Part shown: positions 3,012 through 3,221 of the stretch, one piece after another
Layout of the letters: each line of letters begins with the position of its first letter
Numbering within the stretch: position 1 is the stretch's first letter
Assembly: GCA_964199315.1 (NCBI GenBank)
Contig: OZ116708.1
Location: 3,968,001-4,032,000, forward strand
Direction: 5' to 3'
DNA from: Orbicella franksi
Lineage: Eukaryota
DNA: 64,000 nt
Program-made: the position numbers and the translations under genes
Notes under the pieces: generated by a model
What the model was told of the DNA's origin: nothing
Seen by the model: the letters and a program-made list of their open reading frames with translations, nothing else
The model's database searches: none

Positions 3012-3221
3012 ATGAATCACCCAAGTGACCTCTCTGCTCGCACAGAACGAGGCTTTACTAATAAAGAAAATGCAGAGGCAATTAAATTTGTTGCCGGAAA
3101 ACTGGCGCTCGTTGGCGACCAGCTGAACCAGTCATATGAAGAATCGCGTTGCAGCGAAGTCAGGTCATGTATAAAGCTGGAAAGTTGCTTAGACATTTTG
3201 CGTTTGGTGCTGAAGGCGTAA
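3012..3221 (+). CDS. BH3-only-like microprotein (copy B), 69 aa
   Basis: Residues 27-42 VAGKLALVGDQLNQSY fit the BH3 consensus h-s-x-x-L-x-x-h-G-D-x-h-N. Amphipathic C-terminal helix LESCLDILRLVLKA. Spliced 5' UTR, and a paralog with conserved N-terminus at 1-50. Confidence 0.8.
   Translation: MNHPSDLSARTERGFTNKENAEAIKFVAGKLALVGDQLNQSYEESRCSEVRSCIKLESCLDILRLVLKA

Follow-up and report, generated by a model that had tools for sequence, protein, structure and literature searches.

On its forward strand, the window (the whole 64-kb stretch of DNA that was analysed) contains a 69-codon open reading frame (ORF) at 3012-3221. Its translation is identical to the 69 residues given in a preliminary description of this DNA, in which the coordinates of the ORF and the numbering of L31 and D36 were likewise correct. 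The features of this locus and of its surroundings are as follows.

1-50, minus strand: start of an inverted (head-to-head) 76-residue paralog beginning MDRPSDISAYTEQGIA..., with its ATG at 50; it runs off the window
2450-2556: promoter-proximal TCGTG cluster, with motifs at 2450, 2476, 2544 and 2551 on the plus strand and at 2506 on the minus strand
2579-2587, plus strand: TATA-like box ATAAAAGGG, invariant in 11 aligned orthologous loci and common to the inverted paralog
2610-2675, plus strand: putative non-coding exon 1, its 5' end approximate (about 25-30 nt after the TATA box), ending at a CTAG/GTAAGT donor
2676-2967, plus strand: putative GT...CAG intron of 292 nt with conserved splice sites
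2968-3439, plus strand: exon 2 as far as RNA reaches, with a 44-nt 5' UTR, the whole coding sequence and at least 218 nt of 3' UTR
3012-3221, plus strand: coding sequence, 69 codons plus stop, starting at the first ATG of the predicted mRNA
3090-3137, plus strand: BH3 motif V27-Y42, the most conserved block of the family, aligning to the BH3 of BID, BAK, BAX, BIM and BIK
3162-3218, plus strand: C-terminal hydrophobic or amphipathic helix R51-A69 (SCIKLESCLDILRLVLKA), the second conserved block and a candidate membrane-targeting tail
19229-22483, minus strand: single-exon ORF of 1,084 residues with many ankyrin repeats and a Mab-21 (cGAS-like) nucleotidyltransferase domain (the ANK-Mab21 gene)
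30590-31219, minus strand: Bcl-2-family ORF (Pfam Bcl-2, E 4e-30) with an intact NWGR and a GGW motif
33176-33430, plus strand: 84-residue BH3-like ORF with the BAK-like motif IGKVLARIGDRIN, head-to-head with the Bcl-2 gene

The 69-codon gene, its transcripts and its surroundings

The coding sequence lies in DNA of about 36% GC, has an A at -3 and is preceded by an in-frame TAA at 2997-2999. The window is of coral origin, and public sequencing runs in which it occurs bear the label "coral metagenome". Residues 27-42 of the encoded protein are VAGKLALVGDQLNQSY, and residues 59-69 are CLDILRLVLKA. The putative exon 1 contains no ATG, and its donor is kept in all orthologs and in the paralog. Exon 2 would start at 2968 behind a pyrimidine-rich CACAG/G acceptor, and the TATA box, donor, and acceptor are all conserved in the 11 orthologous loci. 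Across the locus, conservation is lowest and indels are most abundant in the body of the intron (0.69-0.85 identity), which is barely alignable between the paralogs, with both splice sites kept. A homolog with 36% protein identity, L033, has the same order of elements (TCGTG cluster, TATAAAT box, GGTAAGT donor, long intron, acceptor), and its acceptor stands about 40 nt before the ATG, as in the window gene. From these conserved sites we infer a spliced 5' exon and a gene of two exons, in which a TATA promoter is followed by a non-coding exon 1, an intron of 292 nt, and a single coding exon. The preliminary description had also proposed a spliced non-coding first exon; the conserved TATA box and splice sites speak for it, although no spliced read was seen at the donor or acceptor in the RNA mapped to the locus.

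The 69-codon ORF is transcribed. A 487-nt contig from run X1, a poly(A) metatranscriptome, matches 2968-3439 without a mismatch at a depth of 10.1 and covers the whole ORF, and the expression whose absence the preliminary description had named as refuting is therefore observed. Poly(A) RNA reaches a depth of 2 in the intron (two read-length contigs) versus 10 in exon 2, a 5-fold difference. Two contigs are unspliced across the donor, one from random-primed RNA (2541-3076) and one of read length from a poly(A) library (2669-2819). At homolog loci, no spliced transcript contig was found; all 20-odd contigs are colinear with the genomic DNA, intron included. No reads from the locus were obtained in a 12% sample of two raw-read poly(A) runs. 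The 5' end of the X1 contig at 2968 was considered as evidence for the acceptor and rejected as an adapter artefact, because its loose letters ACACGACGCTCTTCC together with the genomic GATCT complete an Illumina adapter. An AATAAA at 3237 is not conserved among orthologs, and an Rfam scan of window positions 1-6000 produced no match.

Two blocks at 0.4-0.8 kb downstream of the stop codon (3592-3711 and 3865-4059) are conserved like the ORF. The first has 0.81-0.94 identity across orthologs and is nearly gap-free, and the stretch 3865-4041 is repeated in inverted orientation next to the paralog (L009:6047-6220). At a depth of 16, a poly(A) RNA contig covers 3519-3900 and further, and an A-rich run at 3838-3857 could give internal oligo-dT priming. 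These blocks, spanning 3592-4059, may belong to an extended 3' UTR or form an element of their own.

The Bcl-2 protein called "neighbouring" in the preliminary description is in fact encoded about 27 kb from the 69-residue ORF, and a sulfotransferase gene and the ANK-Mab21 gene stand between the two. After its GGW motif, the frame of the Bcl-2 ORF reads V-S, fitting a TGG/GTAAGT donor at the conserved BH2 intron position, and the membrane-anchor exon of this gene is thus probably further downstream. The 84-residue ORF at 33176-33430 has no Pfam match, and it was rejected as a member of the 69-residue family after hhalign matched the motif only, with a probability of 8%.

Conservation and selection across the family

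Syntenic orthologs of the gene are present in at least 14 other coral-derived assemblies. The ortholog contigs are genomic and share with the window a downstream minus-strand gene for a 436-residue sulfotransferase. A word-index protein search returned 14 clusters of 69-71-residue proteins at 70-99% identity, and proteins of the family go unnamed in every source queried. All 15 orthologs share L31, G35, and D36, and frame +1 is the only frame without stops in all 15 orthologous copies. Among the 14 intact copies, changes in the length of the ORF are limited to a one-codon indel that keeps the frame and a stop that is displaced by one codon; the 15th copy, L022, has a frameshift downstream of the BH3. 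Indels that are not multiples of 3 (e.g., 4 and 13 nt) are found in the intron and in both UTRs, right before the ATG and right after the stop. An antisense ORF of 75 residues (3017-3244, minus strand) was considered as a rival coding frame and rejected, as it is not consistently open in the orthologs.

Ortholog species share about 80% identity over the entire region, non-coding flanks included, and protein identity alone therefore says little. Together with a whole-ORF dN/dS of about 0.66-0.7, this means that the ortholog set on its own indicates weak constraint. Whole-ORF dN/dS was set aside as a coding test, with a value of about 0.7 that was uninformative until the ORF was divided into blocks. 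The preliminary description had proposed conservation and dN/dS across corals as a check, and by block the ratio is 0.34 for codons 22-42 (BH3) and 0.46 for codons 51-69 (C-terminus), as compared to 1.6 for codons 1-21 (N-terminus) and 1.4 for codons 43-50 (linker). Minimal counts of nonsynonymous and synonymous changes are 33:23 in the two constrained blocks versus 37:8 elsewhere (Fisher p=0.017), and the constrained blocks depart from the neutral expectation of 0.76 with p=0.0035. Purifying selection is limited to two parts of the protein, its BH3 block and its C-terminal helix.

The wider family gives the strongest evidence for a real gene. Among 1.8 billion representatives, an exhaustive HMM search identified 29 proteins at E<=1e-3, mostly of 70-100 residues and with 31-59% identity. 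ORF length and layout are kept at this distance, where non-coding DNA would not align, which supports coding. In the alignment of the 29 members, V27, L31, and G35 are invariant columns, and M1, I24, A28, D36, L38, and S41 are at least 90% conserved. The best-conserved block has the consensus EAIxSVANKLAIIGDxLxQSY, the second block, at the C-terminus, reads SCxxLExCLDIxxLxLKA, and the N-terminal MDxPSDIS is conserved as well. The ORF at 3012-3221 is not a chance ORF but a real, conserved, transcribed gene.

Two copies from different lineages, L022 (L022:723-933) and protein P0043, have a frameshift after the BH3 (...QSYEEL) that swaps the C-terminal helix for the same alternative-frame tail (...GKLLGHFxFGA...). 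These variants may represent pseudogenes, errors of assembly, or a tail-less form that recurs.

The BH3 motif and C-terminal helix compared with known proteins

The BH3 signature comprises 13 residues, h1-small-x-x-h2(L)-x-x-h3-small(G)-D-x-h4-polar cap, and the coral protein agrees with it at every position (V27-A28-G-K-L31-A-L-V34-G35-D36-Q-L38-N39). The preliminary description had pointed to four hydrophobic positions together with Gly-Asp and Asn, and all of them are present, with V27 as h1, L31 as h2, V34 as h3, and L38 as h4, the small residue A28 after h1, the G35-D36 pair, and N39 as the cap. The invariant and near-invariant columns of the 29-member alignment include the same signature positions. 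BH3-like motifs are short and are also present in proteins outside the Bcl-2 family. Across the six-frame translation of the window, a loose BH3 pattern had 3 matches versus 0.71 +/- 0.83 in shuffles, which is not a significant enrichment; the motif stands above chance because of its conservation and not because of the pattern by itself.

Profile searches returned BH3 proteins throughout. Searched against the PDB, the ortholog profile had BID, BAK, or Bik BH3 peptides as its top 13 matches and as 16 of its 20, and with the family profile all 40 matches at E<=10 were to BID, BAK, BAX, BIM, or BIK (best E 0.042), among them full-length BID and BAK aligned on their BH3. Among Pfam models, BID was matched by 19 of the 29 members, the Bim BH3 model (Bclx_interact) by 6, and Bik by 1, all below gathering scores. 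For the 69-residue protein, the BID model (PF06393) reached 12.4 bits against a cutoff of 25 over profile positions 75-100, which are the BH3 alone; no full BID helical-bundle domain was found in it above the gathering score, and Pfam Bcl-2 gave no match, in line with a BH3-only protein, which lacks BH1, BH2 and BH4 motifs as well as the Bcl-2 fold. Each of the three Hydra BH3 peptides given in PMC7489894 scored better with the family profile than 500 shuffles of itself. The nearest named clusters in a protein-language-model comparison were PXT1, Noxa/PMAIP1, BMF, BIM, and BIK (0.79-0.86). Since no single match to a known BH3 is conventionally significant, the evidence is the unanimity of the matches. 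The earlier designation as a BH3-only microprotein is thus favored by family conservation, BH3 profile matches, block-wise selection, and RNA, with the qualification that none of the matches is significant individually.

In terms of structure, AlphaFold2 (AF2) with the family alignment as input predicts one helix over residues 7-68 and no bundle. The pLDDT is 95-96 for residues 21-40, which include most of the BH3 motif (about 95 over its helix), and 54-65 for the polar N-terminus (residues 1-20). This predicted picture is the usual one for a conditionally folding BH3, and the polar, poorly conserved N-terminus is probably disordered. The C-terminal stretch of this copy has a best 15-residue Kyte-Doolittle mean of 1.4 and contains D61 and R64, and the segment with these residues is too polar for a classical transmembrane anchor. 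In several distant members, the mean is 1.8-2.1; their stretch ends in K plus 1-3 polar or basic residues, and their C-terminus looks like a tail anchor. Because C53 and C59 are conserved in the C-terminal helix, lipid modification could be considered as an alternative means of membrane attachment.

In the tail-anchored BH3-only proteins Bim, Bik, and Hrk, a C-terminal hydrophobic stretch with a basic residue at its end comes after the BH3. The coral protein shares this order and its basic end, but its hydrophobic stretch is short and, in this copy, broken by D61 and R64. Vertebrate Noxa (PMAIP1, PF15150) is similar in being tiny and in having one BH3 and then a short C-terminal helix, which in Noxa is for mitochondrial targeting, and the PMAIP1 cluster is among the nearest language-model neighbors of the coral protein (0.86). 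In contrast, PF15150 matched neither the 69-residue protein at E<=10 nor the 29 members at E<=1, and the coral BH3 has the L-A-x-[IV]-G-D-x-L-N form that is typical of BAK and BID. The term "Noxa-like" in the preliminary description is therefore apt for size and layout and should be read as architecture only, because the BH3 is BAK/BID-like and homology to PMAIP1 is not detectable. The same description likened the amphipathic C-terminal helix to the Noxa segment; a conserved hydrophobic helix is indeed there, but it has no sequence relation to the mitochondrial targeting domain of Noxa. The best sequence matches are the BH3s of BAK and BID (IARHLAQIGDEM and VGRQLAIIGDDINRRY versus coral VAGKLALVGDQLNQSY). 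BAK is a multidomain Bcl-2-fold protein and BID a 195-residue helical bundle, whereas the coral protein has the motif only.

Cnidarian BH3-only proteins provide a further comparison, and for Hydra HyBH3-only-2 a report by Lasi et al. from 2010 is said to belong alongside that of Banjara et al. from 2020. HyBH3-only-2 is the sole biochemically supported cnidarian BH3-only protein and binds HyBcl-2-4 with a KD of 149 nM (Banjara et al. 2020, PMC7489894). The coral protein resembles it in being short, cnidarian, and endowed with one BH3, in Hydra of the xxLxAIGDxI type, and the HyBH3-only-2 peptide scores above all its shuffles with the coral family profile. Homology outside the motif is undetectable, and the coral family has MDxPSDIS and SCxxLExCLDIxxLxLKA blocks of its own. 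Suraweera et al. presented candidate Acropora and Nematostella BH3-only proteins in Fig. 5 of their 2022 paper (PMC8998228). As described there, these are of the same class and animal group and draw on the same kind of evidence (motif and predicted disorder); beside the candidates in that figure, the coral gene has an intron-less coding sequence and a probable 5' non-coding exon. The peptide strings of the coral family (KLAIIGD, KLALIGDQ, and similar) occur in no paper of the full-text literature searched.

A candidate role in mitochondrial cell death

Most likely, the 69-residue gene is a trigger of mitochondrial cell death that has no name so far. It probably encodes a transcriptionally controlled, pro-death BH3-only protein of the Bcl-2 family with a C-terminal helix for the mitochondrial outer membrane and a BH3 for groove binding. 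In the proposed mechanism, the pathway would start with transcriptional induction of the protein, whose C-terminal helix would carry it to the outer membrane of the mitochondrion. There, V27, L31, V34, and L38 of the BH3 helix would enter the groove of Bcl-2-fold proteins, with D36 pairing with the arginine of their NWGR motif. Groove binding might either neutralize pro-survival proteins or directly activate Bak/Bax-like effectors, and the outcome would be outer-membrane permeabilization and the promotion of apoptosis. Splicing, membrane targeting, groove binding, and pro-death activity are each what we infer for the coral protein. A Bcl-2-fold gene with an intact NWGR in the same window was counted as support for the BH3-only reading.

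Other explanations have to be set against this one. The gene could be a genuine conserved microprotein with another job, e.g., a membrane-associated or coiled-coil regulator, whose likeness to a BH3 is coincidental. We consider this unlikely, even though every match to a known BH3 is sub-significant individually, BH3-like motifs are degenerate enough that about 0.7 are expected per window, the continuous helix predicted by AF2 would also suit a coiled-coil or membrane-surface peptide, and the gene is not next to a Bcl-2 gene. Against a coincidence, the invariant positions of the family correspond one-for-one to the contact positions of a BH3, the G-D pair and the small residue that follows h1 among them. 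All eight signature positions are reproduced, which is not expected of a helix conserved for another reason. In addition, every PDB match of the family profile is a BH3 protein, and the language-model neighbors are BH3-only families.

Two further alternatives question the gene itself. That the ORF is untranslated, a chance open frame in a conserved non-coding transcript or regulatory region, would agree with the near-equal conservation of flanking non-coding DNA in close orthologs (about 80%) and with the whole-ORF dN/dS of about 0.7. Even so, it is very unlikely: the frame stays open at similar length down to 31-36% protein identity, selection is block-specific, the other frames all have stops, and indels that are not multiples of 3 occur in the UTRs while the ORF of the 14 intact copies has in-frame one-codon changes only. 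The ORF also begins at the first AUG of the predicted mRNA with an A at -3. It is exceedingly unlikely that the locus is what remains of a Bak-like multidomain gene, with a BH3 exon that was retained, instead of an independent BH3-only gene. Such an origin is brought to mind by a strikingly BAK-like BH3 (xLAxxGDxxNxxY) and by profile alignments to full-length BAK that extend a few residues beyond the BH3. However, conservation extends to the start codon, the stop codon, and the C-terminal block, a TATA promoter and a putative 5' exon belong to the gene itself, and the family is an old one that has kept its paired layout. Past the stop codon, the RNA contig stays colinear with the genomic sequence, which indicates that nothing is spliced on downstream. 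A Bak origin would account for ancestry and would not imply loss of function.

The inverted 76-residue paralog is full-length in L009 and L010, where it has VANKLAIIGDEL and the same C-terminal block (...VANKLAIIGDELSLSY...SCATLEGCLDILLSxLKA). A divergent pair of family genes is also present at L033:4789-5058 (minus) and 9971-10243 (plus) (L033/L034) and at L035:7187-7425 (minus) and 9992-10429 (plus), where one partner is split by a frameshift. Its presence in two more distant genomes indicates that the arrangement is old. In both paralogs, a TCGTG cluster stands just upstream of the TATA box, and another is found at L033:9238-9320. The block at 2450-2556 is 85-95% identical and gap-free across orthologs, and 10 of the 32 TCGTGA sites of the 64-kb window fall within 600-2560, each set facing its gene. 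TCGTG is the core selected by NPAS4/ARNT2 (PMC12774657), and the clusters offer a lead toward control by bHLH-PAS factors of the NPAS4/Dysfusion class. No full p53 response element, as for Noxa and Puma, was found in the window.

Apoptosis is central in coral bleaching, disease, and development. The multidomain Bcl-2 proteins and caspases of corals have been catalogued, and the BH3-only class merely sketchily. BH3-only proteins are hard to find because their sequence is barely conserved, and in 2016 Moya et al. pointed to the BH3-only repertoire of corals as an important piece still to be resolved (PMC4715348). A conserved, transcribed family with a defined promoter supplies peptides and genes for studies of binding, localization, killing, and expression, and it offers a marker of the initiation step of the intrinsic pathway for coral stress transcriptomics. 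A bolder and rather doubtful proposal is that the gene is the founding example of an unnamed coral, perhaps anthozoan-wide, BH3-only family, in which a head-to-head pair under TCGTG clusters acts as a trigger inducible by stress or signals. If true, this would link an environmental sensor to mitochondrial apoptosis in corals, e.g., in bleaching or symbiont control. Ankyrin ORFs are also present downstream of the family pair in the distant L033, which hints at conserved microsynteny.
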